Part shown: piece after piece, positions 11,401 to 60,790 of the stretch | Layout: every line of letters starts with the position of its first letter | How positions within the stretch are numbered: the stretch's first letter is position 1 | Assembly (NCBI GenBank): GCA_965112735.1 | Contig: OZ218959.1 | Coordinates: 1,116,001-1,180,000, forward strand | DNA: 64,000 nt | From: Phaeosaccion multiseriatum | Taxonomy: Eukaryota; Protista; Ochrophyta, other classes | Direction of reading: 5' to 3' | Notes under the pieces: model-generated | What the model was told of the DNA's origin: nothing | Seen by the model: only the letters and a program-made list of their open reading frames with translations | The model's database searches: none | Position numbers and translations under genes: made by a program

Positions 11401-12065
11401 TGAACTGCAGTTCGTGATGGAGGCGGTGTCGTTCATCACCAGCACTGCGTTCTTCGCCCATATGCAACCCCCTACACTGGCATCAGAGGAGGTGAGCACA
11501 GTCGTACCCAACATCTCGACACGACCAATTGAGGGCGTGGCCTGGGTAGGTGGGTGAGTGATTGAGTGAAGGGCAGTGGCGGACGTCACTAGAGGCCGAG
11601 GAAAACAAACAGGTGGCAACCACGTCTCACCTTAGGGTCCCCTGTACCAACCCGTATGGCTCCGCCGTGGCCGTCGGTGTGCCCGTTCGCGAGCGTGATG
11701 TCCCTTAGGATAAGCACCGCCCCCTCAAGCACACTGAACAGCGTCGAGTTCCATCCCCCATCTATCTGCGACGTTGCTGCATCCGCCCCTGTGATGGCCA
11801 GAGTAGTGGTGTTCCCGACCACCGCGATCTCCTCGGTTACCAGAATGTTCGCCTCCCATGCCACCTCTATCCGCACAGGTGACTCAAACGAGGAGGAGGC
11901 GCTGCTATTTAGCAGGGCCTCCCGCAGCCGCGACACATCCTCCGCAGAGGTCACAGTCAGGGACACGACCTCTTGGCCACATACGGGTAGCAATAGCATC
12001 GGCAGCAGCAGGAGCACCAACAGCAGCTCCTGCTGCAACCGGAACAGCCTAAGTCTGACTTTCAT
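5411..12065 (-). CDS. Pmp-like beta-helix multi-TM surface receptor, paralog A; 10 exons: 12065..11631, 11541..11329, 11024..10753, 10504..9981, 9856..9381, 9017..8810, 8501..7575, 7404..6919, 6636..6395, 6256..5411
   Basis: Signal peptide (LLLVLLLLPMLLLPVCG|QE), repeated GGA[IVL]...FxxN motifs and a Cys-rich linker (CDVCDAD...CLGTGACKGG...CNAGYEGPYCAVC). About 9 hydrophobic segments follow, with motifs FQTFAC...YLRADYAIEC...YPMGIP...FYWELCECARRLLL...QPF typical of protist GPCR-related/TRP-like membrane proteins. All junctions are GT-AG and in phase. Confidence 0.85.
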
Positions 12066-13942: not shown

Positions 13943-15530
13943 CTAACCACTCTGGTCGCTCTGCATCCCCCCTCCTCCTCCTCCTCCTCCTCCTCCTCCT
14001 CCTCCTCCTCCTCCTCCTCCACTCCCTGCTGCGAGCCCCCCCATCACCTTCCCCTCGGGGCCGCTGACATTGCTCCCCATCGCGTCAGGCCCTGACCCGA
14101 GATACCCCATGGTCTTACCCTCAGGGCCGCTTATGCTCTGGCCACTCTGACCACTCTGCATCCCTCCTCCTCCTCCTCCTCCTCCTCCTCCTCCTCCACT
14201 CCCTGCTGCGAGCCCCCCCATCACCTTCCCCTCGGGCCCGCTGACATTGCTCCCCATCGCGTCAGGCCCTGACCCGAGATACCCCATGGTCTTACCCTCA
14301 GGGCCGCTTATGCTCTGGCCACTCTGACCACTCTGCATCCCTCCTCCTCCTCCTCCTCCTCCTCCTCCTCCTCCTCCTCCACTCCCTGCTGCGAGCCCCC
14401 CCATCACCTTCCCCACGGGCCCGCTGACATTGCTCCCCATCGCGTCAGGCCCTGACCCGAGATACCCCATGGTCTTACCCTCAGGGCCGCTTATGCTCTG
14501 GCCACTCTGACCACTCTGCATCCCTCCTCCTCCTCCTCCTCCTCCTCCTCCTCCTCCACTCCCTGCTGCGAGCCCCCCCATCACCTTCCCCTCGGGCCCG
14601 CTGACATTGCTCCCCATCGCGTCAGGCCCTGACCCGAGATACCCCATGGTCTTACCCTCAGGGCCGCTTATGCTCTGGCCACTCTGACCCCTCTGCATTC
14701 CTCGTCCTCCTCCTCCTCCTCCACTCGCTCCTGCCAGCACCCCCATCATCACCCCCCCGGGGCCGCTGAGAGTGCTCCCCCCCATCGACGTCAAGTTAGT
14801 ACCCGACCCGAGGCTCCCCATCACGACACCATCGGGGCCGCTGATGCTCTGGCCACTCTGACCACTCTGGATACTCTGCATCCCTCCTCCTCCTCCACTC
14901 CCTGCTGCGAGCCCCCCCATCACCTTCCCCTCGGGCCCGCTGACATTGCTCCCCATCGCGTCAGGCCCTGACCCGAGATACCCCATGGTCTTACCCTCAG
15001 GGCCGCTTATGCTCTGGCCACTCTGACCACTCTGCATCCCTCCTCCTCCTCCTCCTCCTCCTCCTCCTCCTCCTCCACTCCCTGCTGCGAGCCCCCCCAT
15101 CACCTTCCCCTCGGGCCCGCTGACATTGCTCCCCATCGCGTCAGGCCCTGACCCGAGATACCCCATGGTCTTACCCTCAGGGCCGCTTATGCTCTGGCCA
15201 CTCTGACCCCTCTGCATCCCTCGTCCTCCTCCTCCTCCTCCACTCGCTCCTGCCAGCACCCCCATCATCACCCCCCCGGGGCCGCTGAGAGTGCTCCCCC
15301 CCATCGACGTCAGGTTAGTACCCGACCCGAGGCTCCCCATCACGACACCATCGGGGCCGCTGATGCTCTGGCCACTCTGACCACTCTGGATACTCTGCAT
15401 CCCTCCTCCTCCTTCGCTTCCTGCTGCGACCCCCCCCATCATCACCCCCCCGGAGCCGCTGACAGTGCTCTCCTCCGGCCCTGACCCCGACCCGAGAGTC
15501 CCCATTACCACTCCATCCGGTCCCTCGACC
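13943..15530 (-). repeat. Coding tandem repeat, about 180-bp (60-aa) unit SGPEGKTMGYLGSGPDAMGSNVSGPEGKVMGGLAAGS(G)nMQSGQSGQSI, 9 units
   Basis: Directly visible. The same unit occurs about 3.5 times at 5490-6010 and 4-5 times at 22640-23610. Confidence 0.95.
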
Positions 15531-17327: not shown

Positions 17328-20300
17328 CACAGGTAGGCAGTTAGACAGGGGAGGGAGGAGAGAACCTAATGCAAAAGCGGGGACCAATGCATTGATCACC
17401 CCTGCCCTCCCTCTCTCTCTTCTCCTCCCTGACCCCCTCCCGGGCACTCACAGATGAGGAAGGCGAACACCAGCATGCCGTTCCGGAGCTTTTCTTTCAC
17501 CGCTGCATCCCACTCCTGGACACCACTGTCCTCCTCCTCGTCGTCGTCCTCCTCTTCCTCCTCCTCATCCTGCTCTTCCTCCTCCTCCTCCTCCTCCTCC
17601 TCCTCCTCCTCCTCCTCCTCCTCCTCCTCCTCCTCCTTCTCCTCCTCCTCCTCCTCCTCCTCCTCCTCCTCCTCCCTGCGCCCCTCGTTCGCTGCTTCGA
17701 CCGACGACGTCGGCGCGCGCGACGCCGTTACGGATGACGTAGATGGGTGCTCCTCGAGGGTCGATGGAGTTGGATTGTCGACAGACGATTGGCCCTCGAA
17801 CATCGGCGGAGTGGGGGCGTCCTTTGAGTCACGACCGAACGCTCCCACGCCTCTCTCGTCCCCTGCCCTGCCCAGAGCAGTCGTGCCATCAGAAAACACA
17901 GAGGAGGGCTTGTTGGTGTTGTTCTTCTTCTTCTTCTTTCTTCTACCCGTTTTCGTCACCACCACCAGCCGGAAAAGGTAGGTGAAGAGCAACACCAACA
18001 GCACAAGCGCGAAGGGCGCGAGTGTGGTGGCGAGCAAACGGTTGTAAAAGCCATCCACCCCGTCAAAGGCGCAGCCGACCGACAGCAGGCGACCAACATC
18101 CAGATCCAGCAGCGACATCCACCCCAAGAAGCGCTCGTAGGAGTGCGGCAGGCGCAGGCCGGTGATGGCGAGGTACTGAGTTAGGATCTGGAACATGACC
18201 ACGGGCGTGCGCAGCTTGCCCAAGGGGAGGGCTCGCACGCTCGCGCCTGCAGAGAGAAGCAACTTGCCGAGTGTAGAGGTGGACTTGCCAACGTCCAGGA
18301 GGGCTGCGTTGGTCTCGTCGACGAGCAGCGCCGACTGCAACGCGCGGTACAGCAGCCACAGAAGCAGCACCAGGACGAGCGCAATCGCTAGCAGCAGGGG
18401 CACAGCGGCGCGAGTGGAGCTCCTGGATGGACATTCGTTACACTGGTGGCCGTTGAAGTTGTAGTAGCCGCTCGAGCATACGGCGCAGTCTGTGCGTGGG
18501 TGTGCGTGCGTGCATGTGTGTGTGAGTTTGTGTGAGAGAGAGAATGTGTGTGTGGGCGTGAGATAGGGGGAAGATGGCACCGAAGGTTTCTCTACATGTT
18601 CTACTTTTTGAGGGCGAGTTTACACAAGGATAACACTCGCTCACCCACTCTCTCCCTCAGTCAGTCACCCAGGTCAACCACTCCCTCACTCACTCACTCA
18701 CTCACTTCCTCACTCAATCACTCACTCTCACTCACCCACCCACTCACTCACTCATTCATTCACTTCAACCATTCACGGATCCAACGCTCCCTCCCTTCCT
18801 TCCATCCACTCACATGGTCCCTCGTACCCCGCGTTGCAGTACTCGCCCGTCTCTCTCGCAGCCACACCGCCCTTACACGCACCAGTGCCAAGGCACTCGC
18901 GCACGTCTACAGACTGCAGAGAGACTCTCCAGTGCCCCGGCAGGAGGGGAATGTCCCGTGGGGTGGTGCCCACGCCGAAGCTGCTGCAAGCCATGGTGTC
19001 TGCGTCACACACGTCGCACATCTGCGCGTGGGTGTGGGTGCGTGTGCGGGGACAAGAGGGAGGGCAGGGAGGGGGCTGAGAGAGAGAACAAAGTGCAGCA
19101 ATGATGAGCGAAGAGGCAAGGCTGTAGTCGCAAAGAAGCCTCCTCCTCCTTGAGTGAGTGCTGCCCCGCTCTTACGGAGTGACCTCAAGGTACGCACTGT
19201 GCGATGACTCCTCTCACTGAGCCCATCGTTCGCCGCCTCCCCTCCCTCCTCCTCCTCCTCTTCCTCCTCCTCCTCCTCTTCTTCCTCCTCCTCCTCCTCC
19301 TCCTCCTCCTCCTCCTCTTCCTCCTCCCCTCCTCCTCCTCCTCCTCCTCCTCCTCCTCCTCCTCCTCCTCCTCCTCCTGCTGCTGCTGCTCCTGCTGCCC
19401 TTCTCTCGTACCTCGTTACGAGGGGACCAGAACTCGCCAATTCGGCAGCATGTTGTGTCGTCGTCTCCCAAGCTGATGTCCTCGCATGAGCAGGAGGAAA
19501 GGGCAGAAGCACACACCCCTGCGTCTCCTTCGCTCTCGTCGCCGCCGCACAAACCCAAGATGTCAAAGTTCCCGTGGCAGCAGCCCGCGCTGTTCCCATG
19601 AAAGGCTATTGGAGTATCAGTAACCGCCACATCAAGACCGCGACGGCGCTGCCCCTCCTCTCGACCAGCAGGGCCATCTGTGATTGTGATCGAGGCAGAT
19701 GACAGTCCGCCGATGCCCCCCCCGCTCCGCAGACACTCATTGTTGGCGACGAGGGTTCCATCCCCAATGGAGAGATCGGAATCGCCGCCCAAGTAAATGG
19801 CACCTCCGTAGGCCCCTGCCGAGTTGTTCGTAACGGTCGTCGCCAACAAGCGGAGGCTACTGACGGGGGCCACGAACAGGGCTCCGCCTGGTGAGAGGAA
19901 ACGGAGGACCGGAAACGGGGGGGAGAATGTGAAACTTATTTACTTGCTCCCGCAGCCACATGAGTGAGGGAAAGAGAGGGACATGCCATTAAAACAAGAT
20001 ACTTCGAAGTAGTAAAGAAGCCATCTCTTTGAAGGCTCTACTAAACGCGTGGCTGTACGTACGTACCATCTTCCGCCGCCGCATTGAGGTGAAAGTCGCA
20101 GTTCTCAATGACTGGAATTCCTCCCTCAACAAAGCCCGCGAGAAACACGCCTCCTCCTCTGCGGGCGGTGTTGTTGACCACTTCAGAGTCCCGCAGCGAG
20201 CCGAGGCCCTCCAGGTACGCCACGTGCAGGGCTCCTCCGTCGCCCTTGGCCATATTATCTCGGAAGAGGCAATTCGAGGTAGTCAGATCCGTACTCTGAA

Positions 20301-21977
20301 ACGCTATGCCCGCTCCATTGACTGCGCGGCTGTTCTCAATGGTGATGATGTCCGTGGGGGTGGCTGGAGTGCCACCATGTATGTATAGACTGCACTCTGG
20401 GCCCGAGAAGATGCCACCCCCCCAATTTGCTTCGTTGGAGTCGAAGGTGACATTACCCGTGATGTTTGCATCGCATCCGTCGTTCAGGAAGAGCCCTCCA
20501 CCTTGACCGAGGGCCATGTTACCCCTGAACTGAGCGTTGCCGGAGATGTTAGCGACGACAGTGTCTGAAAGTAGCACCCCACCGCCGTAACTATTCAGAG
20601 CAAGCAAAGAAGAGACGGAGGGAGGGAGGGAGGGGGCGGTCCACGTGATGGTGTGATGCGAGGCCGGTATAAGGCTTGACTGGCGGATGCAAACGAACAT
20701 CGTTTCACAGGCGAAGGCAGGAGGTGACACAGCCCCCACTCTCCGTCTCCACTCACCTCGCTTTGTTGTCCACAAACGAAGCTTCGTCCGAAACGTTGAG
20801 GAAGCACTTGTTATTTATGAACACCCCCCCTCCGTACAGCCCTGCCTCGTTCTCGCAGAAGTTGGCTCTGCCGCTGAGTGTCAACTTGCTCATTATCTCA
20901 ATGTGGACACCGCCTCCTCCGCCGTTGCGTTGGATAACTTTGTTGCGGCACATCGAGGCGTCATGTTGCATGATTATGGAAGCTTCTTGTGAACAAAAGA
21001 CAGCGCCGCCTCCCTTGAGGGACACACACTTTTGTTTCGGGGGGGGGCGGGGGGGCATACAGGCAAAAGATGCGCGGAGGGGGAGAGACGAAGGAAGCAA
21101 ACCGTTACGGAGTGGGGGTGGGGAGGGGGAGGGGGAGGGGCTCGCAGAAAGGCAAGAGCAATAAAGGCCCTTCGCCGCAGGCCGAGTCTTAGCCGCCGAG
21201 GAGGGCATCGGCCAGCCCATCCCGTCCGCTCCCGGGGAGAGGGCGCGGCTCACAGTGCAACCCTCCCGTCAATATACACCCACCACACGGACACACATGG
21301 ACATATGCACCTGGCTGCTTGCTTACCGATTCAATCGAGGACTCGTCCCTCATCTCCAGGGAAGACCCAAATCCATACATGAAGATCGCTCCGCCCACAT
21401 TCGATGAGTTGCAGTGGGTGATGGAGGCGCTGTCGTTCATAACCAGCTCTGCGTGAATCGCCCATATGGCCCCGCCATCAAGGGCGTTATTCGAGGTGAG
21501 CACACTCTCGCCCACAATCTCCACGCGACCCCCCAGCACCAATATGGCTCCACCGCCACCTCTACCCTCCCTTTTGCCAGTCAACAACAAAATGCCCCCA
21601 TCTTTGTCTGCGATGCTCGACCCGTTGGCGAGCGTCATGTCCCTCAGGATCAGCACCGCCTCTGCACCCACACGGAATAGTCTTGTGGTCCCTCCTCCAT
21701 CTATCTGCGACGTTGCGGCATCAACCCCTGTGATGGCCAGGATCGTGTTGCTCACGTCGAGCTGCTCGGTTAGCGGGATGGTCCCGTCCCATGCCACCTC
21801 AACCCGGCGCTGCTGAGCCTGTGTGGTATTCAGGATCTCACGCAGCCGCACCACGTCCTCCGTGGAGTTCACAGTCAGGGACACGACGTCTTGGCCGGAG
21901 ACGAGCGGCAGCAGCAGCAGCAGCTGCTGCAATCCATGCAGGACGAGCCACCAGAGAACACTTTGCCTGCCTTCCAT
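13943..21977 (-). CDS. Pmp-like beta-helix multi-TM surface receptor, paralog B (about 9 exons; 9 tail repeat units)
   Basis: Collinear with paralog A exon by exon. ATG at 21977 with signal peptide (LQQLLLLLPLVSG|QD). Poly-Glu loop near 17540-17670. Stop TAG at 13945-13943. Confidence 0.85.
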
Positions 21978-22892
21978 CCTGGAAGCAGCAAGTCAACAGC
22001 AGATCTTTGACCATAGAAACTCTCCTCTTCTCCCTTCTCCCTCCTACAGCTCTGCTGAGGCGGATGCACCGGCCAAGAAGATGCCTGAGGCGGAGGTCCC
22101 TCAGCGTGACGTCCAACCACTTGAGCACCTAAGCCGCTGGTTCAAGCAATGCGAGGCCTCGCTCACGCCACCCCCCGCCCCTCGCTCCTCGGTCAGCAGC
22201 TCCTCGAAGCAACAACGTCACCGCAACCAGCCACTTGTGTTGTTGTTTGGCCCCTCTTCGCCTTCTGGACCTAGCCGCCGCTCCTCCCCTTCCTCTTACA
22301 TTCTTCTTCTTCTATCTCTTCAACTATTTTATGATGGACCTCCACAAAGGTCCCCTTTATTTTCTCTAGACAACGGCTCCACTACTGTGATGAGGCAGAC
22401 CTCTTTTACCTGTATGATAACGCGCTCTCTCTCTCTCTCTCTCTCTGTATGATCACGCTCTCTCTGTGTGACCCCTGCTGAGGGAGCTCGGAGGAAAGGA
22501 TACAAAACAAAAAGGAATCCAAAAATGCGTGCAGAGAACCCCACGGAGAGGTTATCCGACGGCAAATTAAAGCCCTTCAATTGGGTAGTGAAGCATTGTA
22601 CCTTCGCTCTCAGCGTTGACCGACGGGAGAATTCCCATGACCTTTCCCTCGGGGCCGCTTATACTCTAGCCACTAGCCATCCTAACCACTCTGGTCACTC
22701 TGCCCCCCCCCCCCCCCCTCCTCCTCCCCCTCCTCCTCCTCGCTCCTCCTCCCCTCCTCCTCCTCCTCCTCCTCCTCCTCCTCCTCCTCCTCCTCCTCCT
22801 CCTCCACTCCCTGCTGCGAGCCCCCCCATCACCTTCCCCTCGGGCCCGCTGACATTGCTCCCCATCGCGTCAGGCCCTGACCCCCCATGGTC

Positions 22893-25800
22893 TTAGCTAC
22901 CCTCAGGGCCGCTGATGCTCTGACCACTCTGCATCCCTCCTCCTCCTCCTCCTCCTCCTCCTCCTCCTCCTCCTCCTCCTCCTCCTCCACTCCCTGCTGC
23001 GAGCCCCCCCATCACCTTCCCCTCGGGCCCGCTGACATTGCTCCCCATCGCGTCAGGCCCTGACCCGAGATACCCCATGGTCTTACCCTCAGGGCCGCTG
23101 ATGCTCTGGCCACTCTGACCCCTCTGCATCCCTCCTCCTCCTCCTCCTCCTCCTCCTCCTCCACTCCCTGCTGCGAGCCCCCCCATCACCTTCCCCTCGG
23201 GCCCGCTGACATTGCTCCCCATCGCGTCCGGCCCTGACCCGAGATACCCCATGGTCTTACCCTCAGGGCCGCTTATGCTCTGGCCGCTCTGACCACTCTG
23301 CATCCCTCGTCCTCCTCCTCCTCCTCCTCCTCCACTCGCTCCTGCCAGCACCCCCATCACCTTCCCCTCGGGCCCGCTGACATTGCTCCCCATCGCGTCA
23401 GGCCCTGACCCGAGATACCCCATGGTCTTACCCTCAGGGCCGCTGATGCTCTGGTCACTCTGACCACTCTGGATACTCCTCTGCATCCCTCCTCCTCCTT
23501 CGCTTCCTGCTGCGAGTCCCCCCATCATCACCCCCCCGGGGCCGCTGACAGTGCTCTCCATCGGCCCTGACCCCGACCCGAGAGTCCCCATTACCATTCC
23601 ATCCGGTCCCTTGACCCTGCTGCTGCCGCGGCCACTGCGGCTAGCAACAAGGCCAGAGGAGTGCCGCGGAAGCGGGTGTTCGTTCACCCGACTGCCCTGC
23701 ATAGAAAAGGACTTGCTGCGGTAGGAAGCGAAGCGCTTGGAGTTACGGACACTTCGCTGGATCCTGGAGCCGGCATTGCACATTTGATAGACCGCAGCTG
23801 AGATCAGAGAAACGTTCATGAGAATGAGGAAGAAGCCGAACACATCTTGACTCTGCTCATCTTCGTCTGATACGTCCACCTGGGAGGAGAAGGAGGAGGA
23901 GGAGGGGACGGGCGTGTGTGTCAAGGGCGGGTCATGTGGACCACACCCAGCAGAAGGAGGAGAGGGGCAGGGAGGAAAGAATGAATGAAAAACCAAGGAG
24001 GGGAAGGGAAAAAGGAAGGAAGGAAGGAAGGAAGGAAGGAAGGAAGGAAGGAAGGAAGGAGGGAAGGAAGGAAGGAAGGAAGGAAGGAAGGAAGGAAGGA
24101 AGGCCCTTCTCCTCCCCGCTCACCTTTGTCGCGAAGGTCAGGAACATGGACAGGAAGATGATGGCCGCCCCGCTGAGGTACAGCTTGGTGTCCGCGGGGT
24201 CGGCGAAGGGTTGCACCGCGGCTGCGATTACCATGGTCCCTGCACTGAACACACAGGCAATACCCGCCTGTCCGGCCGTTCCGGCGAGCACAAAGACGAG
24301 CACTCCGGTGAGGAGGAGACGTCGAGCGCACTCGCAGAGCTCCCAGTAGAAGTGCTTCTCGCGGTCTGTAGTAGGTATGGAGTGGGGCAAGGGTCAGCAG
24401 CGTCCAGCCACGCAAGGAGCCGAGGTAAAGGGGGTGAGAGGAGGACATCAGAGTTAGAGCTCGCCTACAAAATGGGATTCTCTCTCTCTTCTCTTGACCC
24501 AGCTACGTGCCCAGACCAAGGAAGGAGGAGGGTTGGAGGGAAGAGAGAAGGAGAAGGGAGAGAGGGGAAGGAGGAGGGCCCGTGTCCACACAACACAACG
24601 GTTTCCATTTGGTTGCTCCAGAGGTGCAAGCACGCTTCCCACTTACAGGCATTCCATAAGAACCCCGAGGACTGGACTTCCTTCTTCCTGGTCCGCCCTG
24701 CCGCCCCCGTGCTCCTCGTCCCCGCTTCCTCCCCACCACCCTGTGACACCTCAGCCCCGTCCGTGGCAGCATCGGCACCGACTGTGCCGTCAACCGCCAC
24801 CCCGGCATGGGCAGGGTTGGTCTCCACACCAGCGCCATCTTCGTCCTCTCCATCCACTCGTCCCTCGCGCAACAGCTGCTGCTCCTCCTGCTCCTTTCCG
24901 CTGCTGCGAGGTCTGCATTCTCTGCTCCTTCTCCGCAGCTCCGTCGCGAACATGTACGGTATGCCCATGGGGTACAGCAGAATCATGCAAGCGGCGTACA
25001 CGCGGAAAGCCGTGTGGCGAGGGGTATAACACTCGATGGCGTAGTCCGCGCGCAGGTAAGATGTGTCGCTTTCGTCGCGTAGGGAGTTGTCACACGCGAA
25101 GGTTTGAAAGACGACGGTACTTGTGCTGGAGTCTGAGGAGGAGGCATGCAGACAGACAAAGAGACAGACAGACAGACAGGCAGGCAGGCAGTCAGTCAGT
25201 TAGACAGGGGATGGAGGAAGGCACGAGAGAACCCAATGCAAAAGCGGGGACTAGCTGGAGCATTGATCGATCACGTTCTCCCTTCCTCTGTCACTCCCTC
25301 CTCCTTCCTGACCCCCTCCCGGGCACTCACAGATGAGGAAGGCGAACACCAGCATGCCGTTCCAGAGCTTTTCTTTCACTGCTGTATCCCACCGCTGCCT
25401 GACGAGACCCTCCTCCTCCTCCCCCTCCTTTTCCTCCCCCCGCTCTTTCTCTTCCTCCACCCCCTCCTCCTCCTCCTCCTCCTCCTCCTCCTCCTCCTCC
25501 TCCTCCTCCTCCTCCCTCTCCCTTCGCCCCGCGTCCACTGGTCCGACCGAAGCAGTAGGTGCAGCTGACAAAGAAGCTTCGACCACAGACATTGAGGAAG
25601 ATTGACCCTCGAGGACGGGTGGAGTGGGAGGGTCGAAGGACCCGCTGAAGGGTCCCACGCCTCCTCCTGCCCCTGCGCTAGGCAGCGGTGTTGCATTCAC
25701 CTTGCCGGCTTCGCCACCAACGTCCCCGTTGCCATCACTCAGGCCAGACTGCTGACTGTGCTGCTGCCGCCACCCACCCCCGCTCGTCCGTCCCCGCCAG

Positions 25801-26432: not shown

Positions 26433-29400
26433 CGTGAGATGGGGGGGGGGGAGGAAGAAGCACCACAGATGTGCTCTCTTTAAGGTATAGTTTTCGACGC
26501 AGTGCCGAGCAGACAGGAGAGTTCAACTACTTCGCACATGACAGAGCAAAAGGCACCGCTTCTCAAGCCATTCGAAGCATTATCGGAGCTGCCTCACTCA
26601 ATCACTCACTCATTCAGTCATCAAGGTCCATCGCTCCGTCACTTACTCATTCACTCACTCACTCCCTCACCCACTCACCACCTCACCCACTCAGCCATTC
26701 ATCGACCCACCCACGACTCCTTCCCTCCTTCTCTCCCTTCTCCCTCCGCCGCTCGACTCGCTCCCTTCCTTCCTTCCATCCACTCACATGGTCCCTCGTA
26801 CCCCGCGTTGCAGTACTCGTCCGTCTCTCTCGCAGCCACACCGCCCTTACACGCACCAGTGCCAAGGCACTCGCGCACGTCTACAGACTGCAGAGAGACT
26901 CTCCAGTGCCCCGGCAGGAGGGGAATGTCCCGTGGGGTGGTGCCCACGCCGAAGCTGCTGCAAGCCATGGTGTCTGCGTCACACACGTCGCACATCTGCG
27001 CGTGGGTGTGGGTGCGTGTGCGGGGACAAGAGGGAGGGCAGGGAGGGGGCTGAGAGAGAGAACAGAGTGCAGCAATGATGAGCGAAGAGGCAAGGCTGTA
27101 GTCGCAAAGAAGCCTCCTCCTCCTTGAGTGAGCGCTGCACCGCTCTTACGGAGTGACCTCAAGGTACGCACTGTGCGATGACTCCTCTCACTGAGCCCAT
27201 CGTTCGCCGCCTCCCCTCCCTCCTCCTCCTCCTCCTCCTCCTCCTCCTCCTCCTCCTCCTCCTCCTCCTCCTCTTTCTCCTCCTCCTCCTCCTCCTCCTC
27301 CTCCTCCTCCTCCTCCTCCTCCTCCTCCTCCTCCTGCTGCTGCTGCTGCTGCCCTCCTCTCGTACCTCGTTACGAGGGGACCAGAACTCGCCAATTCGGC
27401 AGCATGTTGTGTCGTCGTCTCCCAAGCTGATGTCCTCGCATGAGCAGGAGGAAAGGGCAGAAGCACACACCCCTGCGTCTCCTTCGCTCTCGTCGCCGCC
27501 GCACAAACCCAAGATGTCAAAGTTCCCGTAGCAGCAGCCCGCGCTGTTCCCATGAAAGGCTATTGGAGTATCAGTAACCGCCACATCAAGACCGCGACGG
27601 CGCTGCCCCTCCTCTCGACCAGCAGGGCCATCTGTGATTGTGATCGAGGCAGATGACAGTCCGCCGATGCCCCCCCCGCTCCGCTGACACTCGTTGTTGG
27701 CGACGAGGGTTCCATCCCCAATGGAGAGATCGGAATCGCCGCCCAAGTAAATGGCACCTCCGTAGGCCCCTGCCGAGTTGTTCATAACGGTCGTCGCCAA
27801 CAAGCGGAGGCTACTGACGGGGGCCACGAACAGGGCTCCGCCTGGTGAGAGGAAACGGAGGACCGGAAACGGGGGGGAGAATGTGAAACTTATTCCTTGC
27901 TCCCGCAGCCACATGAGTGAGGGAAAGAGAGGGACATGCCATTAAAACAAGATAGTAAAGAAGCCATCTCTTCGCAAGCTCAACAGAAGGCTTGGCTGTA
28001 CGTACCATTGTCCGCCGCCGCATTGAGTTGGAAGTCGCAGTTCTCAATGACTGGAACCCCTCCGTCAAAGCCCGCGATAAACACGCCTCCTCCTCTGCGG
28101 GCGGTGTTGTTGACCACTTCAGAGTCCCGCAGCGAGCCGAGGCCCTGCAAATACGCCACGTGCAGGGCTCCTCCGTCTCCGCTGGCCAAGTTGTCTCGGA
28201 AGAGGCAATTCGAGGCCGTCAGACTGATGCTCTCAAACGCTATTCCCGCTCCAGTGGAGGCGCGGTTCTTCTCAATGGTGATGACGTCCGTGGGGGTGGT
28301 GGGAGTGCCACCGTCGATGTAGAGCTCACACTCTGGGCCCGAGAAGATGCCACCCCCCGAGGTTGAAGCTTCGTTGGAGTCGAAGGTGACATTGCCCGTG
28401 ATGTTTGCATCGGATCCGTCGTTCAGGAAGAGCCCTCCACCTTTCGCGAGGGCCACGTTGCCCCTGAACTGAGCGCTGCCGGAGATGGTAGCGGTGATGA
28501 CGTCCGAAAGCAGAACCCCACCGCCGTACCTAATGGGGGCATCCGAAGGCAAGAGGGAGGGAGGGAGGGAGGGAGGGAGGGAGGGAGGGAGGGGGTGAGC
28601 TGATGACGTGATGCGAGGCCGCCATATTGTTTGACTTGTTGGCGGGTGCGAAACAACACCCTCTTCTAACAATCAAGTGGTGCAAGACGTGACACAGCCC
28701 CCACTCTCCGTCGCCATTCACCTCGCTTTGTTGTCCACAAACGAAGCTTCGTCCGAAACGTTGAGGAAGCATTTATCCACCATGAATACTGCCCCTCCGT
28801 ACAGCCCTGCGTCGTTCTCGCAGAAGGTGGCCCTCTCGCTGAGTGCCAAGGAGCTAAAGCTCTCGATGTGGACGCCGCCTCCTCCCCCGTTGGAACGGCT
28901 CACTCTATTGCGGCACATCGAGGAGTCGTCCTGCATGACGATGGAACACTTGTCCACACCGAAGACGGCGCCCCCTCCCAAGAGGGATACACACTGTTGT
29001 TTCGAGGAGCGCCCCCGGCGCAGCCCGGTGGGGGCGTGGACGGAGGGGGAAGAGCGAAGCAAAGAGAGAGAAGGACCACACATTGAGAGGCAGTCAAGGG
29101 AAGAGGTATACAGACAAGGCAAGAGCATTTCGTAGCCTTCGCTTTAGCCCGAGCCTTGGCCGCCGAGGAGGGGTTGGACGGCCAGTTCAGCCCCGGTCTG
29201 CTCTCAACCGGCGGGTAGCTACACACACGCGATCATAGGCGGATAGGTACACACCCTGCTCACCGATTCGATCGAGGACTCGCCTCTCATCTCCAGGGAG
29301 GATCCCTCCCCGGCCATGAAGACCCCTCCGCCCACACCCGATGAATTGCTGTGCGTGATGGAGGCGGTGTCGTTCATCACCAGCACTGAGCCGAACACAG

Positions 29401-29884
29401 CCATGGCACCCCCGTTCACCGCCTGGCTCGACGTGAGCACACTCGCACCCACAAGTTCCACGCGACTCCCCACCGTCCGTATGGCTCCACCATTGCTGTC
29501 GCCCTTCCCGTTGGCCATCGTCACATCCCGCAGCACCAGCACGGCCCCCTCACTCACGTCGAACAGCGTCGAGTTGTCCCCTCCATCTATCCGCGACGTT
29601 GCTGCATCCGCCCCTGTGATGGTGAGGGTGGTGTTGCCGACCACGTCGAGCTTCTCCGTTAGAAGGATATCTGCCTCCCATGCCACCTCTACTCGGACAG
29701 GTGATAGAGACGAGGCGCTCACGTTCAAAGCCTCCCGCAGCTGCGCCACATCCTCCACAGAACTCACGGTCAGGGACACGTCACCCTCGGAGTCTTGGCC
29801 ACAGACGAGTGGGAGTAGTAGGCCTAGCAGCAGCAGCAGCAGTAGCAGCAGCTGCTGCAGTCCGTGCAGCAACCTGACCCTCAT
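22893..29884 (-). CDS. Pmp-like beta-helix multi-TM surface receptor, paralog C (about 9 exons; an upstream in-frame ATG at 30121 is also possible)
   Basis: Collinear with A and B. Signal peptide MRVRLLHGLQQLLLLLLLLLGLLLPLVCG|QD from ATG 29884. The tail ends at a stop created by a 4-bp insertion. Confidence 0.85.
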
Positions 29885-32312: not shown

Positions 32313-35300
32313 ATGTTTTCTTTTGTCTCCAAAGCGGGCTGCTGCTGGGGATCCTTGCTCATTGCCGTGCTGATTGGCCCCTGTGCGGTGGATGGGCAGG
32401 AGGCACTGACTTGCACGTCTTCGATATCCAACACGACAAGTAGTGCGTCGTTTTCCCTGGACGGAGACCTCAGCTGCGGAAGCCAAAGCACCACCAGCTC
32501 TGGAGATGAGAACTTCTACAGCGACGTATTTGTTGTCCCCGACGGAGTGGAGTGCACCCTTGTGATGTCTGCCGACTCAGGTGGGGAACTGCTGTTGCTT
32601 GTTGTAGTAGTTTTTTGCTTCGCCCCATGAATGGCTCCTGCCTGCGCGCCTGCCTGCCATCGCCCGACAGTGTTGAGCGCGCTTCACTTCTACGTAGGGC
32701 CTGGTGCAAGCCTGACGGCCGAGAGCAACGGCTTCACGCTGTCCATGGTCGATAACGTGGCCTTGCTGGAGGCGGACCCTCTACTAGGGGAGGATCAGGA
32801 CACAGATGACCTTCCCTTTTACATCAGCGATTTTACGGGACATGCCATCAACACGGGAACAGGCAGCACTTTGACCTTCGATGGAGATGTGGAGTTTCGA
32901 GGGAACACCGGTGCGGAGGTGAGAAGCCAAGCCGGCCTTCACTAGAGCGAGATGGATTTGGACAAGAAAACTAATGCTGTCCTGCCTGTTGTATCTTCCC
33001 TGGCTGGCGTCTGTCTCCTCCTCGCTCCGGCACTTGCCTGGGAGGCTCCATGCCCTGCTGCTGGCTAATGCGTGGGCCATTCTAACCATCGTTCGTCGGG
33101 ACTCAGTATGTAAGTGGAGGAGAGAGGAGGGTGTACATGCATGCAGAACCAATTCCCCTGCCAAACTCCTTTATTGATTCCCTTGTCCCCTCCTGCTCAT
33201 CCACGTCACTGACAGGGAGGGGCAGTGCATGCTGGCGTACGGAGCACGGTCACTTTCGGAGGTAACACGGTCTTTTCGGGAAACGAAGCCTCGGAGGTAC
33301 GTCTGTGCCCTTGCTTGCTGTGCCCTCTTATGTCATGGGTGGTGGGCTCGCTTGGCTGAGTCCACCGCTTCCCTTTCACCTTTCTCTTCCTGCCCAGCCA
33401 TACTTTGCTTTTAGGAGAAGCGCTCTTCCTCCTGTCCATCCATGCGCTGAATACCTCTCCGCTTTGACCAATTGAGCCGCTGCAAGCTTGGCTGCCCACG
33501 ACTCGAATGTTCTTTCTTCTCTCCAAGCGGGCGCCGATTCGCCCCCACCTTTTTTTACCCATTCCTTTCCTTCTGCTCCCGCCTTGTGTCTGATCCGTTT
33601 CTTTCCTTTTGTTCCTTTCGTTCTGCTGCCGCCTTTTTCTAACGCATTCCTTTCCTTCTGTTCCCTTCTCCCCTTCTTTCTCCTTCTGTTCGCAACAATA
33701 GTTCGGCTACGTAAGTGGCTAAGCCGCAGGAGCTGATGTGCAGACTGTTCTTTGTCCTTCTGTCTTTGTTGCACTGCCCTTGACCAGCGTGTGGTCCCTC
33801 TAGTAGTGATGCCCTTTGCTGCCTTCTACAGCCCACCTCTCACGCCACTTGTTCGAATCCGCACGGGCGCTTCATCCATTCGCGAACCCAGGCGGGAGCC
33901 GTCCTCGCCAGCCCAAACAGCTCTGTTACTTTTGAAGCCGATGCAACCTTCTCAAACAATGTGGGCCCGGTAAGGCGAGGAGGGGAGGGGAGCTTGTTAC
34001 CTGTGGAATGACATGACGAGCGTGGGAGCGCTTACTGTTTGCAAGCCGCCATTGGCCACCGTGCTGCACTTGACACGACAAGAGGGTGTGCGCGCGCGTG
34101 TGTGTGTATGTGGGTGTGGGGGTGGGTGGGTGTGGGTGTGTGCGTGTGTGTGGGGGGGTGGGTGTGGGTGCGAATGTGTGTTCTGCCGCCGTGCTCGCTT
34201 CTCCCCTGGCGTACCCTGACCCCCCGCCCCCCCCCCCCTGTGTCACCCCCCTCTCTCCTACCTACTCTGCCCCCCCTCACTCGTGTCGTCCGCTTGCCCT
34301 GCGTGCCACACCATCGGGTGCCGTCGAGCAGAACGTAAGAGTGCTGGTGATGGCTAGCGCACACGGTTTACGGTTTCCGCTTCCGCCCCCTCCCCCCCAT
34401 TGCAAAAACTATCTCTCTCTACGCCCAGTGTGCTCGCGAAAAGGAACGGCAAAACTCACGTCTGGACACGTTGCTTGCTCTTTCGTCTTGTTGGGCGTCT
34501 TGTTGGGGGTCTTGTGTTGACAGGGAGCAGGGGCTCTGTGGCTCTACGAGGAGAGCGCCGTGACTTTTGAAGGGACTGCAAGCTTCTCGGATAACAACTC
34601 CGGCAACTATGTACGTCAAGGGGTGGAGCAAAGTAGTGAGCCTTCCGTTCTTCGAATGACTCACGTCTTAACGTGACCCCTCCTGACCCCCCGACACCTT
34701 TCATGTGCCCCTATCGATGGAATGGCCTCACTTCCCGGGCGCGCTTTGAACCTGCTTCTGTCTCCGGCGCTTCATCACCTTACGGTGGCACTTCACGATG
34801 CTTGGGCACGACGCTCAGAACGTAAGTGGAAGCCTCTTGGCCGTGATTGTGCCTGGAAGGCAGAGAGGTTAGCCCCCTTGCAGTCTTGGGGCCGGCCTCC
34901 GCACGCTGAGCAAGGGAAGTAGATGGGAAAATTGTTCGCTAGCGCTGTTCATGCATGCTTGGCTGAGGAGATAGCCCAACTTCTGACATGACTCCTTGCC
35001 TAACCACCTCCTCGATCGTTCTCGCTCGGCCGACCCTCTGGACTTTCATCAGGGAGGGGCGGTGCTCGTCTGGGCTGGTGCCAGTCTGACCTTTGCGGCA
35101 GACGCCACCTTCTCCAACTGCCAGGGTGACTGGGTACGTGCAAAGTGTTGATCTCCGTCGAAAAGAGCTTCCAGAGTCCGTCTCTCTGTCCGTGCAGTGG
35201 AGCTGCTGACGCACCGTCACCACCAGCAAGAGATGCTCGGGGGGAAGAGCTTGGCAACCGACGCTCGCGCGTCTGCGTCACGTCACAGCGGGGGCGGGGA

Positions 35301-38300
35301 GGAAGAGAGGCAGCGGTGTCTTATCACTGTTCCGTCTATCGAGACTGCCGTCAACGTTGGTGTCTTCTTTCCCCCTCTCTCCTCGCTCCTTTCGCTGTCC
35401 TCTTCTGCTCTGTTCTACCCTCTCCAACAGGGAGGCGCCATCTACGCTGAAAGCGCCACAGTCGTATTCGCTGGAGAGAGCTCCTTCTCCGAGAACGTCG
35501 CCCAAACGGTGCGTGGCCGTATTTAGCAGTTATTCAACGGGTGGTCGGAAGGCGATTGGGGAAGACGGGAGGGGTGCTGCAGGCAGTCACGTGGCTGGGT
35601 AGGCCAGGTCGGCTCGCGCGGCTCGTTGTCGGTTTTGCTCGTCTTGCTTGTCAGGCGGCTTGGCTCTTTGGCCCATTGTTGCGCTAATGCCCATGAGTCC
35701 CCCTTCTTGTTTGTCACAACCGCCGGTTCTCCACCCCCGGCCCTTCATGGTGCACGCATATCCTCCTTAGTGGGTAAGTCATGAAAGAGGGCTCCTCTCT
35801 TGAGAGGGAGAGGAAGAGGGGAGAGAGGGTAACTGAAGGAGAGGCAGGGTGGAGGTCGCACGGTCGTCCCTTTACTCGCTCGGCCAGTCGGAAGTGTGTC
35901 TGACGAAAGCTGATGAATCACGTGCGTGTTGCGCCGTGCCATCAACAGGGAGGAGCGGTGTACGGAGAGTCGTCCACCTTCATCTTCGACGGAAGCGCGA
36001 CCTTCACGGCGAACGAGGCCGGGGTGAGTACACGCATATGGTACAAGTACAGGTGCATTTCTGCGCTTGACGGCCTCAGTGAAGCACCACTCCGCCTGGT
36101 GGTATTCCCTTCTTCTCCTTTACCGTCTGCTTTATGCCTTTCTCACTTGCAATCGACGCTCTTTGCTCTCTCTCTGGTCGTCTGTCTTCTTTTGCTCCCA
36201 TGACCGGCCATGTCATCCTCACGTCCCTCCCCGCGCTCCCCTGTCGCTCTGCTTTTTCCTTGTCTGTTGCATCTGACAGGATGTAAGTGTGGCAGTGAGG
36301 CAAGCACCGCTCCCCTTTTCTTGGCGCGGGGGGGGCACCAAGGCGCTGAGCTTCACATGCTTGCCGTGGAGAAGGGGCTCATACACAGCGGGCCATGGCC
36401 ATGCTCTTGTTGGCTTTTAGCAGCCCTGACGTCGTGTCCTTTTCCTTGTTTGCACATTGATAACCGCATGATAACCGCAGGGAGGTGCGCTCCTGCTGGA
36501 CGGGTGCAATGCAGCCTTCAGAGGAGAGACGACTGCTTTCGACGGAAACACGGCTGTGTCGGTGAGTGTGGCACGCGTGGCCGTCGGAGAGGGCAGGACA
36601 GGGATGGCACCAAAAGCGGAGCGGCTATCCTGGCTTTGGTAGCCAAGAGGCTAGCCCCTCGTATGATGCGTGATGGACCAAAGGGAGTGAGCCAAAGCCA
36701 AAGAGATCGAGAGAGGTCCTGCACGCTCTCCTTTGAAACGAGTGACTCCGTTCTCGCCCCCCCTTCGCTGCTGCGGTCTTTACGCATGAGATGCACAACA
36801 GCTCTGGCGCTCCTTGTTACGCCATCATCACCCACGTTGGTGCTCTAGCACCGGACACACCTCGAATCTGATGCCGCTCCGCCGTGTCCCCATGCCTTGC
36901 CTTGCTTGTCGCTCTGTCGTATCTCTTTCTCTTGCGTCGTCTGCCCGGCGCTCCTGCTGTGGGGTGTCGACACCTCGTTCATGTCCTCTTTCTCGTGCCT
37001 ACCAAGGCTGGGAGCGGGGGGGGTCTCCTCGTACGAGCGGACGGCCTGGTCACCTTTACCGACGTTAGCTTCACGGGGAATTCTGCCGGCTATGTAAGCG
37101 AGGTTGCCTTCTTCCCGCCCTACCCCTCCTCAACCCGCGAATCGTCCTCCATGTCTGTGTGCGAATGGCCCGCACGTAATGCGTGAGGAGGTGCTGGAAA
37201 GAGGTGTCTAACTGATCTAACGGTACTGCCCTTTGCTTGCGACCGGAGCAGCGAGGTGCTGCTTCTCTTCTAATGCGCACCACCGCTGTCGGACACTCCT
37301 TTGCGATGCTTTGCGATGGCATACTATTGATCGCGGCGTGGCCCATTTTCGTCTCACTCTTTGCCTCTCCTTTCGCCCCTCGTCTCCCCGGACTGGCTGG
37401 GTGCCCCTGCGCTCGGCCCGCCTTTTTGTGGTCGCCGTGACTTCGGCCAATCATTAGTATGTAAGTAGCAAGGGCAACTGGCTTTGCATGCACATGATCT
37501 GAGAGGAGGGTAGGAGGGAACGACGGAAACCCATTGCCTGGGAGGAGGGAACATGGCGTGTGTGGAGAGGCCCACAGGCCATTGCTTGTAGCAGCCGTTC
37601 GCTGCCGCCCGTTCCCGACCCCACACTCCTCCCCCCCCCCCCCGCGCCTCCCCATCCTCGTCGCTGCCTTACGGGGGCGCCATTCGGCTGCCTTCCTCTC
37701 TATAGGGCGGGGCACTCTCCGTGGATTACAGTACCAACGTTACCTTCCTGGAGCCCGCGACCTTCACTCAGAACAGCGGCGGCTACGGAGGGGCGGTGGG
37801 GGTGTCAGGCGAGGTGGGCGCCCTGTTTGCCAAGGGAGCCCTGTTTACGGACAACTCGGCTGGTGACGACGGCGGCGCCGTTTATGTAGATGACGACGCG
37901 CGTGTTCGATTCGGCTCCGGGGGAGACACCATCTTTCGGGAGAACCAAGCCGAGGAGGATGGTGGGGCCATTGGCGGCAACTTTAATAGCCTTGTCGACT
38001 TTGAGGGAGATGTATCGTTCGAGTCCAACACGGCACGCAACGATGGGGGCGCAGTGAGTGCCGGATATCGCAGTATCTTCACCTTTGACGGAGACGCCAA
38101 CTTCGTCGGCAACGAGGCCACCTTCAACGGCGGAGCGGTGTACGTTTCCGAAGGGCGCGTGTTGTTCCAGGGCGACACCACGGAGTTTTCGGACAATTCC
38201 GCCACCTCGGGCGGCGATGCCATCTTCGTTGAAACGACTGGGAACCCGCTGGTCAGGTTGTGCGGCACGGTGGGAGGCTCGGACTCCCTGCAGGATTCGT

Positions 38301-38740
38301 CGGACTTCGCCAACGTCAACTCCGATACCACGTCCACGTCTTGCGACGGCGAGGACGGTGGAGAGCCTGTTGGAGACGACAATCGCGACGGGGGCGGAGG
38401 AGATAGCGGTGATGAAGATGGCGAGGACGGTGGAGAGCCTGTTGGAGACGACAGTCCCGATGGTGGGGGCGGAGGAGGTAGCGGTGATGAAGATGGCGAG
38501 GACAGTGGAGACCCCGTTGGAGGCGACAGTCCCGATGGTGGAGGAGATGGAGGCGATGTAGATGGCGAGGACGGTGGAGACCCCGTTGGAGGCGACAGTC
38601 GCGACGGGGGCGATGTTGATGTAGGGACCCAAGAAGACGGGGCTGGCATGAGGGCCCCCCGCGGCGCCTTTGCCGTGCTAGTGGCGGTAGCAGCAAGCCT
38701 GCTGCTGCTGTGCAATGGTGGTGCTTCTCTCTCGGTGTGA
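32313..38740 (+). CDS. Secreted, probably GPI-anchored Pmp-like beta-helix protein. Exons 32313..32580, 32671..32918, [33107..33109], 33216..33296, [33702..33710], 33892..33969, [34332..34334], 34524..34610, [34819..34821], 35053..35133, 35431..35508, [35771..35773], 35949..36023, [36280..36282], 36481..36561, 37007..37093, [37458..37460], 37706..38740 (brackets = microexons)
   Basis: Signal peptide (GSLLIAVLIGPCAVDG|QE), about 15 GGA...FxxN rungs, an acidic D/G stalk and a C-terminal hydrophobic tail AFAVLVAVAASLLLLCNGGASLSV. Every listed exon is bounded by AG and GT, and all junctions after exon 2 are phase 0. Confidence 0.85.
38346..38625 (+). repeat. Coding repeat, 4 x DGEDGG(E/D)PVG(D/G)D(S/N)xDGG acidic stalk
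   Basis: Four imperfect units of about 70 bp within ORF 37721..38740. Confidence 0.85.
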
Positions 38741-43859: not shown

Positions 43860-43961
43860 ACTCCTACACCACAAAAGGTATTGTGCTTCCCAAGGCTTGT
43901 AGCACCCTCAGTAATTCACGGCCTACCTAAGAACACTACCAAAGAACACACAACAGCGAAC

Positions 43962-45239
43962 ATGGCCGCGATGACGGAGGCGACCCCCACCAGCAAGCCT
44001 AAGGTCGCCCTGGTGACCGGCATCACGGGCCAGGACGGCTCCTACCTCGCAGAGTTACTGCTGGAGAAGGGCTACGTGGTGCACGGCATCATTCGCAGGT
44101 CGTCTTCTTTCAACACGTCGCGCATCGACCACCTGTACCAGGATCGCCACATTAAGGACGCTAAGCTCTTCCTGCATTACGGCGACTTGACCGACTCCAC
44201 CAACCTCGTACACATCATCTACGAGACGCAGCCGGACGAGATCTACAACCTGGGCGCAATGTCCCATGTGAAGGTAAGCGTGGTGCATGAAGAGTTTCGG
44301 AGGGGGGGGTGGAGAGAGAACGTGGAAGGAAGAGGTGAGGGGAGGAAAACACACTGCATTGCTGTACATGCATGCTGTGTAACTCATGTCGAATTGTTTG
44401 TTCTTTCCTGTTGTTGCTCAACCACACTTGCTTTGCTTTTGCTCATGTCAAAGGTGTCCTTTGAGATGTCCGAGTACACCGCTGAGGCTGATGGCGTGGG
44501 CTGCCTGCGCCTGCTCAACGCCATACGCTCCGCGGGCCTGGAGAAGAAGTGCCGCTTCTACCAAGCCTCCACCTCGGAGCTGTACGGAAAGGTGCAGGAG
44601 ATCCCCCAGAAGGAGACCACGCCCTTCTACCCTCGCTCCCCCTACGGAGTGGCCAAGCAGTACGCCTTTTGGATGCTCATCAACTACCGAGAGGCCTACG
44701 GCATGCACCTCACCAACGGCATTCTCTTCAACCACGAGAGCCCCCGCCGCGGCCCAACCTTCGTCACGAGGAAAATCACTCGGGCGGTGGCTCGCATCCA
44801 CCGCGGCCAGCAGGACTGCCTCTTCCTGGGCAACCTCGACGCCAAGCGAGACTGGGGACACGCTCGCGACTATGTCAAGGGCATGTGGCTCATGGTGCAG
44901 AGGGACACGCCGGAGGACTACGTGCTCGCCACGGGAGAGTGCCACGAGGTGCGCGAGTTCGTAGACAAGGCCTTCGCCTACGTGGGCACTACCATCGTGT
45001 GGGAGGGCAAGGGCGTGGACGAGAAGGGCTACAACGCCACCGATGTCGACAAGAAGAATCCTCTCGTGCAGGTGGATGCAGAGTACTTTAGGCCTACGGA
45101 GGTGGAGCTGCTTGTGGGCGACCCTGCCAAGGCCAAGCGCGAGTTGGGGTGGGAGCCCGAGGTGACTTTCCAAGAGCTCGTCAACGATATGATGAAGTCG
45201 GACTTGGAGCTTGTGGACAAGGGCGACAGGCACTCGTAA
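43962..45239 (+). CDS. GMD: GDP-mannose 4,6-dehydratase; join(43962..44273, 44454..45239)
   Basis: [72 protein letters not shown] and [15 protein letters not shown] are all present. One GT-AG intron at 44274..44453. Confidence 0.97.
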
Positions 45240-46084
45240 AGAGAGAGAGAGAGGGGAGAGCCGAGGGGAGGGGGGGGGGGTGGTACGGGGTTGCGAGGGT
45301 GGACGGCGGGGGGGGGGGGGTTGCTGCAAAGAGTAGGTGTCGCACGTGGCTCTTGAGGACATGGGGCGACAACTACTCGTAGAGAGAGAGAAGAGCGGGG
45401 CTGCGGGGGCTAGGCTACTTACTGCAGTTGTGGAGTTGGAGTCGGAGGAGGGGGGGGGGCAGCTTGGGCTGAAAGAAATCAGGAATCACCCCATGTGTGC
45501 CAGGCCACGTGCTGCTGCTGAGGGAGAACTAATTTTCATTGAAGCAATCGAAACAAGAGCTTCTGATCTTCTGTGCGCCTCACTGGGTCATCTCACGGGG
45601 TTGCTCACTCTGCAGAATCTGCCTGAATAGAGCAATTGCGCCTCGCCTCCCCCCACCTCCTCTGGGTTGGGTTGTACGCACGCACGCACACGCTTCGAGC
45701 TCTTCTGGTAGGTGCCGTAAGGTGCCATACTGTGGGGGGGTTATGGAATGGACGGCTGTGGAGAGGTGTCGTATATGTATGGATTGGGCGCTGGAGTGGA
45801 CTGGAGTGGACTGCCTCGTTCGCTCTGGTCACACACACACACAAAGACAGAGAGAGGGAACTCTCGCGGGGTCTCCCCCGTCTGTCCTTTTCCTTTCTCC
45901 CCTCTCCCCGACACATTGCACCCCTCCCCTCTATCGTCTGCCTCCCCCCCCTCCACCTCCACCGATTGACTCCAACGGGCCAATGGGTGCGCCGTCAGAT
46001 CGATAGAGAGCGAACAGAGCAACCACGTGTTGTGTGGCCGTATCTCCCGTGTGGCAGGCAGCGTGGCGTTGGCGCCGCTGCAGC

Positions 46085-46762
46085 GCAGATGTATCATAAA
46101 TTGCTGCTGTGCCCTCAGCTGCAGGTGTATCACCAACTGTTGCTGTGCCCTCAGCTGCAGGTGTATCACCAACTGTTGCTGTGCCCTCAGCTGCAGGTGT
46201 ATCACTAATGCTGCTGTGCCCTCAGCTGCAGATGTATCACCAACTGTTGCTGTGCCCTCAGCTGCAGGTGTATCACTAATGCTGCTGTGTGCTCTCAGCT
46301 GCAGGTGTATCACCAACTGTTGCTGTGCCCTCAGCTGCAGGTGTATCACTAATGCTGCTGTGCTCTCAGCTGCAGGTGTATCACCAACTGTTGCTGTGCC
46401 CTCAGCTGCAGGTGTATCACTAACTGCTGCTGTGCCCTCAGCTGCACATGTATCACCAACTGTTGCTGTGCCCTCAGCTGCAGGTGTATCACTAATGCTG
46501 CTGTGCTCTCAGCTGCAGGTGTATCACCAACTGTTGCTGTGCCCTCAGCTGCAGGTGTATCACTAATGCTGCTGTGTGCTCTCAGCTGCAGGTGTATCAC
46601 CAACTGTTGCTGTGCCCTCAGCTGCAGGTGTATCACCAACTGTTGCTGTGCCCTCAGCTGCAGGTGTATCACCAACTGTTGCTGTGCTCTCAGCTGCAGG
46701 TGTGTCACCAACTGCTGCTGTGCCCTCAGCTGCACATGTATCACTAACTGCTGCTGTGCGCT
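46085..46762. repeat. Minisatellite, about 18-19 units of 35-37 bp (GTATCACCAACTGTTGCTGTGCCCTCAGCTGCAGGT)
   Basis: Head-to-tail units without spacers, including 35- and 37-bp variants (GTATCACTAATGCTGCTGTG...). Lies between the convergent GMD and glycosyltransferase genes. Confidence 0.95.
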
Positions 46763-46844
46763 CAGGCACGGCAAAGCAGGGTTTTGCGTGCCTGTGTGCG
46801 TGCGTGCGTGAGTGAGTGAGAGGCTCGGTTGGGGCAAGGCTCTG

Positions 46845-60746: not shown

Positions 60747-60790
<44 letters not shown>

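Follow-up and report, generated by a model that had tools for sequence, protein, structure and literature searches.

Candidate single-codon exons in register with the repeats of a PMP-like gene, predicted to encode a beta-helix, of the alga Phaeosaccion multiseriatum

Known microexons and the gene under study

Microexons of 1-15 nt are conserved in land plants, where they are crucial for gene function and widely misannotated (Yu et al. 2022, PMC8831610). Those of a single nucleotide keep conserved GTRAGT donors, and in some lineages or gene copies microexons have been lost via fusion to a neighbouring exon or complete intron loss (PMC8831610). Here we describe a comparable arrangement in the ochrophyte alga Phaeosaccion multiseriatum, in a stretch of 64,000 nt of contig OZ218959.1 (assembly GCA_965112735.1, positions 1,116,001 to 1,180,000 of the forward strand). 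This whole stretch is called the window below, and all coordinates refer to it. The gene in question lies at 32313-38740 on the plus strand and codes for a putative surface protein with PMP-like repeats, many of which are encoded by separate short exons ("rung exons"). Seven of the gaps between the exons hold a cassette, i.e. an acceptor, 3 or 9 nucleotides and a strong donor, which we interpret as a candidate microexon. As in plants, these would be ultra-short coding exons between ordinary introns, with strong donors and with loss by fusion or intron loss. The plant cases, however, come one at a time (occasionally two adjacent) in conserved housekeeping domains, whereas here a single gene for a lineage-specific algal surface protein has seven, each at the equivalent point of a tandemly repeated protein unit. 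Plant microexons are moreover backed by RNA sequencing, whereas the present cassettes are known from the DNA sequence alone.

Arrays of very short exons have been described in the micro-exon genes of Schistosoma, which carry symmetric exons of 3-81 bp and code for secreted or surface proteins (10.1101/2023.06.21.545858). The likeness to our gene is an array of symmetric, very short exons in a gene for a surface protein. DeMarco et al. reportedly described in 2010 that exon skipping in the Schistosoma genes yields protein variants. The differences concern the proportions of the gene: the Schistosoma genes consist mostly of microexon coding sequence and have introns of up to 5 kb, whereas here 27 of ~2200 coding bases come from microexons, in strict alternation with rung exons of 75-87 nt and with short introns. 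We considered a classification as a micro-exon gene of the Schistosoma type and rejected it, the coding sequence being far from mostly microexons.

Single exons of 3 nt occur in animals (e.g. Drosophila homothorax, human MAP4K5, cytohesin-1) and in plants, and 3-nt microexons are also reported for the dinoflagellate Amphidinium carterae. These share with our cassettes their size, the kept reading frame and the difficulty they pose for standard aligners. The animal and dinoflagellate exons are isolated, though, and often regulated (neuronal in animals), and none is described as periodic in the register of a structural repeat. In the literature we found no account of single-codon exons that recur periodically, in step with a repeated protein unit. 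Haptophytes likewise yielded no published microexons, and for brown algae nothing relevant turned up. An earlier note on this DNA had claimed novelty for the arrangement. This claim calls for moderation, since single 3-nt exons and the arrays of Schistosoma were known before.

The encoded protein can be compared with the chlamydial Pmp family (PF02415). As in that family, FxxN and GGA[ILV] motifs occur at the usual spacing. AlphaFold2 predicts a beta-helix for the intron-free rungs. Unlike chlamydial Pmp, the gene is eukaryotic and rich in introns, and its product has a predicted signal peptide, an acidic stalk and a hydrophobic tail. An autotransporter barrel is missing: Pfam reports no such domain, and the C-terminus consists of an acidic tandem repeat and one hydrophobic segment.

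Cassettes between the repeat exons

All seven cassettes are on the plus strand. The first, CAG/TAT/GTAAGT (Tyr, 33107-33109), is flanked by introns of 188 and 106 nt and has a CTAAC 21 nt upstream. The second differs in holding 9 nt, TAG/TTCGGCTAC/GTAAGT (Phe-Gly-Tyr, 33702-33710); its flanking introns measure 405 and 181 nt, and it is preceded by CTAAC and a long pyrimidine tract. The third, CAG/AAC/GTAAGA (Asn, 34332-34334), is the sole cassette with a donor other than GTAAGT. Further downstream follow CAG/AAC/GTAAGT (Asn, 34819-34821), TAG/TGG/GTAAGT (Trp, 35771-35773), CAG/GAT/GTAAGT (Asp, 36280-36282, with a pyrimidine tract upstream) and TAG/TAT/GTAAGT (Tyr, 37458-37460). The earlier note had listed the same seven sites, and a base-by-base reading of 32500-38500 confirmed each of them. 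Its statement that they are multiples of 3, stop-free and in phase 0 likewise holds for 7/7 cassettes.

The placement of the cassettes is far from random. The pattern YAGNNNGTAAG matches six times on both strands of the 64-kb window, and 6/6 matches lie in this gene on the coding strand. Shuffled sequences give an expectation of 1.95 for the whole 128 kb searched, which scales to ~0.06 in the ~4 kb of coding-strand intron. The earlier note had proposed a scan of this kind for the whole genome; on the window, it returned zero matches outside the gene. A similar picture emerges for the donor alone: between 32919 and 37705 the plus strand contains GTAAG nine times, and 9/9 are proposed donors (seven belong to cassettes, two to rung exons). 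Scanning all inter-exon gaps for AG-N(1-30)-GT[AG]AG yielded one strong cassette in seven gaps and none in two, and the same scan found no comparable second cassette in any gap. That the cassette pattern is real, and not due to chance, is confirmed.

The codons themselves provide a second type of evidence. With the cassettes included, the residues before GGA at the seven junctions are Y, Y, N, N, W, D and Y; when they are left out the residues become E, E, P, Y, T, G and Y. Six of the seven cassettes end in N, D or Y, which together make up 4.4% of the non-stop triplets (binomial P = 5e-8 against random triplets drawn from this gene's GC-rich introns, stops excluded). In homologues the position is occupied in a similar manner: across 3037 FxxN...GGA repeats, taken from 183 homologues, GGA is preceded by N in 19%, S in 16%, D in 11% and Y in 10% (56% together). 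The spacing from N to GGA in these repeats is 6 in 58% and 5 in 26%. As the earlier note had stated, the intron-free last exon of the gene itself carries Y, D, D, D and N before GGA. Its wording that each cassette adds a residue before a GGA-type motif is correct as to the position, but two of the motifs that follow are AGA and GAGA instead of GGA.

A repeat hidden Markov model (HMM), built from 1200 homologue repeats of which none belongs to this gene, scores the protein at 147.5 bits with the cassettes and at 133.7 bits without them, a gain of 13.8 bits. Inclusion raises the score at 6/7 junctions. Random insertions of equal length score 139.2 +/- 3.3 bits, and 4/400 reach the observed value. 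The donors of the cassettes also stand apart within the gene: GTAAG follows 7/7 cassettes (GTAAGT 6/7) against 2/10 other donors (Fisher P ~0.002). When the 17 intron pieces were compared with one another by BLAST, the best match had E = 0.013, and only short low-complexity matches were seen. Given that the introns show no detectable similarity, the cassettes are not leftovers of a recent duplication. And since the introns have diverged whereas the cassettes persist, the latter appear to have been kept while their surroundings decayed.

Structure prediction shows where the added residues would lie. The intron-free rungs of the last exon, submitted to AlphaFold2 together with 41 homologue segments, are modelled as a beta-helix with three strands per rung of ~28 residues (pLDDT 96.7). 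The residue before GGA falls in a non-strand turn of this model, between the FxxN strand and the first strand of the next rung. Foldseek comparison with the PDB gave weak beta-solenoid matches only (best E = 0.09).

From these sequence features we consider it highly likely that the cassettes are genuine phase-0 spliceosomal microexons whose codons are spliced into the mRNA. It is also probable, at a somewhat lower level of confidence, that they are included mainly constitutively in the principal transcript, which would code for a beta-helical surface protein of the PMP type, because the donors are uniformly strong GTAAG(T) and the added residue takes a place that is conserved in the repeat. 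A transcript of this kind would encode junction-spanning peptides with the inserted residue, for example ...NTGAEYGGAVHAGVR.

Two side observations concern the surroundings of the third cassette. Its acceptor is preceded by a second one (tandem acceptor GAG/CAG, 34326-34331), a NAGNAG-type option in which use of the upstream AG would yield an exon of 6 nt (Gln-Asn). In the intron upstream of it (34086-34290) a long G/T-rich run, GTGTGGGTGGG..., occurs soon after the donor, and a C-rich run complementary to it, CCCCGCCCCCCCCC..., stands before the cassette.

Origin, splicing and competing readings

The amino acids supplied by the cassettes (Y, FGY, N, N, W, D and Y) would occupy the turn that directly precedes the GGA[VIL] motif at the start of the following rung. 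We infer that the array arose by tandem amplification of an ancestral module made up of a codon, an intron, a rung exon and a second intron. Subsequently the introns would have diverged beyond recognition, and the codon and its splice signals would have been kept by selection. At two junctions one flanking intron may be missing, so that the codon became fused to a neighbouring exon, and the last exon is free of introns altogether.

The two junctions without a cassette can be compared with this proposal. In the gap at 35134-35430 the upstream exon ends in ...GAC TGG/GTACGT; the W before GGA is encoded by the exon, and only the downstream intron is present. The last codon (TGG) of this exon, 35053-35133, thereby holds the position that is filled elsewhere by a microexon. 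In the gap at 36562-37006 it is the downstream exon that differs: it opens with AGS-GGG, and the AGS codons resemble the 9-nt FGY microexon fused to a rung. The earlier note had proposed that an exon supplies the linker in both gaps, and the sequences ...QGDW/GGA and ...TAVS/AGSGGG bear this out. The view that the cassette-free gaps are junctions which miss one flanking intron is thus supported by what they look like. The second of these gaps also contains a weak extra candidate, AAG/GGA/GTGAGC (Gly, 36684-36686), which has a purine-rich upstream region and a weaker donor and is probably a chance match.

The window contains three tandem PMP-like paralogues on the minus strand (9600-30200), with GGA motifs at ~9776-11666, 19807-21554 and 27761-29491. 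Their exons carry several rungs each, and their introns near GGA occur in other phases and positions (...NKAR/YGGAV in phase 2, ...ADN G/GGAL in phase 1). No 3-nt cassettes were found in the three paralogues; therefore the architecture is not general to all PMP-like genes of the window. The same strand harbours tandem units of 174-177 bp at 13983-15517 (up to ~7 copies) and 22756-23591 (~4 copies). Each unit comprises a run of GGA triplets, a GTAAG donor and a short stretch that resembles an exon, and the units look like an amplified module of exon plus intron in the stalk part of the paralogues.

Splicing of such short exons would put specific demands on the machinery. The introns that flank the cassettes are 106-405 nt long (the other introns of the gene measure 117, 297 and 445 nt), and because they are this short each is probably recognised as a unit, i.e. 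by intron definition. The two introns around a microexon would probably be removed one after the other, because an exon of 3 nt cannot hold the acceptor and donor complexes together (the AG and the U1 footprint overlap). Either order would leave a normal substrate for the second step. On the exon side of the donor the cassette bases TAT, AAC, TGG and GAT are unlike the usual (C/A)AG. Microexons are expected to need strong donors, since the exon side cannot contribute to donor recognition, and the near-perfect U1 complementarity of GTAAGT may compensate for an exon side that is unable to match the consensus.

A number of observations limit the case for inclusion of the cassettes in the mRNA. 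The three sequencing runs in which the locus is represented (X1-X3) are genomic: depth is level at 70-110 across exons and introns alike, the contigs are colinear, and no splice joints occur at the locus. Runs X1-X5 come with no stated library kind, and a further one (X6) is listed as probable DNA. The one RNA run, a metatranscriptome (X7), covers only 200 nt of the last exon at 95% likeness. No orthologue above 43% identity was found (best 40% in a protein search with the last exon, 43% in an exhaustive representative search), nor did a scan of metagenome contigs reveal a relative. The earlier note had also pointed to branch sites and pyrimidine tracts upstream of several cassettes. The sequence does show CTAAC at 33082 and at 33639, as well as a pyrimidine tract at 36240-36270, but overall there is no pyrimidine enrichment before the cassette acceptors (0.61 against an intron background of 0.58). 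Skipping of the cassettes would keep the frame and leave a spacing from N to GGA of 5, as in 26% of the family repeats. At the junction NY/N/GGA the HMM even slightly prefers skipping (16.8 bits with and 18.4 bits without the cassette), and Trp before GGA, as supplied by the fifth cassette, is rare in the family (9/3037).

The contig from the metatranscriptome run, which is labelled as another organism, corresponds to 37884-38083. It shows 10 differences, 7 of which are tabulated, and 3 of these are at third codon positions. Judged from this sequence, a close relative or paralogue of the gene occurs in the environmental RNA library; its presence alone is no sign of transcription.

One alternative holds that the cassettes are intronic signals which never enter the mRNA: decoy or intermediate splice sites that would aid or regulate the removal of the intron, or yield unproductive transcripts. 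The frame stays intact on skipping, as this requires, and the placement of the cassettes demonstrates selection on the signals but not by itself translation of the 3 nt. On the other hand no donor is regenerated after a first splicing step, as 3 or 9 nt lie between AG and GT, and the undivided introns are only 297-612 nt long, so that stepwise removal is unneeded. A pure signal would also not be enriched for family-matching codons (N, D and Y; P = 5e-8, see above), and it would not always be a multiple of 3. Altogether we regard this alternative as unlikely.

Recursive splicing deserves separate mention, as the earlier note had kept ratchet points as a fallback. This candidate was rejected: the AG does not abut the GT, and because no donor is regenerated across the 3 or 9 intervening bases (none of which start with GT) the fallback fails.

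The next alternative assumes that the microexons are genuine but are included or skipped independently of each other, which would give up to 2^7 (128) surfaces that differ by one turn residue per rung. All cassettes are symmetric (phase 0, multiple of 3), so any combination would remain in frame. The family repeats show each of the two spacings that would result (58% have 6 and 26% have 5), and the encoded residue is in a turn and not in a strand. The tandem acceptor at 34326-34331 (GAG/CAG) could supply a further small variant. There is also a precedent in the symmetric 3-81 bp microexons of the Schistosoma micro-exon genes (10.1101/2023.06.21.545858). The donors argue against optional use, however: those of the cassettes are uniformly the strongest possible, as constitutive use predicts. 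In addition, the site that the residue takes is conserved in the family, and inclusion beats skipping by the 13.8 bits given above. The plant microexons of 1-15 nt, conserved and crucial for function, show that small size alone is not a sign of optional use (PMC8831610). We therefore consider combinatorial inclusion doubtful, and give it little credence relative to mainly constitutive inclusion. If true, it would represent splicing-based surface diversification in a free-living alga, possibly common to other PMP-like genes of the genome.

That the cassettes are chance matches, or neutral relics of a recently duplicated intron, is barely credible: short motifs do arise at random (1.95 are expected per window, and 1/100 shuffles reached six anywhere in the window), but all six matches cluster on a single strand within ~4 kb, no gap having more than one, the introns lack detectable similarity so that nothing was recently copied, and the codon identities fit the protein family. 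An assignment of the cassettes to a repeated intron or mobile element was likewise rejected, as the introns share no similarity.

Gene structure, neighbouring genes and significance

The splice sites of the gene (32313-38740, plus strand) were fixed base by base, and the spliced frame is open either way, giving 733 aa with the cassettes and 724 aa without them. The predicted protein has a signal-peptide-like N-terminus and ~15 rungs in which FxxN and GGA[VIL] motifs recur, followed by an acidic stalk and a hydrophobic tail. Exon 1 (32313-32580) contains the start codon and codes for the signal-peptide-like hydrophobic N-terminus; it ends in phase 1 at CAG/GTGGGG. Exon 2 (32698-32918) ends in phase 0 with ...FRGNTGAE, at GAG/GTGAGA.

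Eight rung exons of 75-87 nt follow on the plus strand, all in phase 0 and all multiples of 3. The first three code for GGAVHAG...FSGNEASE (33216-33296, 81 nt), AGAVLAS...FSNNVGP (33892-33969, 78 nt) and GAGALWL...FSDNNSGNY (34524-34610, 87 nt). The fourth, GGAVLVW...FSNCQGDW (35053-35133, 81 nt), precedes the first gap without a cassette. Next come GGAIYAE...FSENVAQT (35431-35508, 78 nt), GGAVYGE...FTANEAG (35949-36023, 75 nt) and GGALLLD...FDGNTAVS (36481-36561, 81 nt), the last of which stands before the gap that lacks a strong cassette. The series closes with AGSGGGLL...FTGNSAGY (37007-37093, 87 nt). Partial matches to the Pfam family Chlam_PMP were obtained for the exons at 35431-35508 and 37007-37093. 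The profile has 19 positions, and since the repeat runs across the exon junction, a rung exon taken singly aligns with only half of them.

The last exon (37706-38740) comprises approximately six intron-free rungs, the acidic repeats, the hydrophobic C-terminal tail and the stop codon. Its rungs show an opening GGAL, five clear GGA[VI] motifs and one degenerate SGGDAI. With 35.5 bits it scores above the gathering threshold of Chlam_PMP (PF02415; 20.6 bits). The acidic stalk is built of tandem repeats of 75 nt (25 residues), with the tandem repeat located at 38348-38604.

Further downstream a homologue search identified a GDP-mannose 4,6-dehydratase gene on the plus strand (43881-45239), with one in-frame, stop-free intron. 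In this search the enzyme resembles its counterparts in several ochrophyte algae and in a haptophyte to much the same degree. A 36-bp tandem repeat of 19 copies (46081-46765) contains CTGTATCACCAACTG, the reverse complement of the 15-bp word CAGTTGGTGATACAG. Two more genes are named from the translation of their open reading frames only: a gene for an MPP10-like acidic nucleolar protein on the minus strand (60223-62663) and one for a COQ3-like methyltransferase on the plus strand (62991-63914).

If confirmed by transcripts, the cassettes would, to our knowledge, surpass any other series of single-codon exons in density and regularity. The arrangement would also have a practical side: software for gene prediction and read alignment would link each rung exon straight to the next and lose one conserved residue per rung. 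The splicing machinery of this alga would, in that case, routinely handle exons that are too short for both splice-site complexes at once, and the gene would be a natural test bed for the definition of microexons and for the order in which flanking introns are removed. It would also offer a clean case of an exon-intron module that was amplified together with a protein repeat, and that selection has kept after the introns lost their resemblance.

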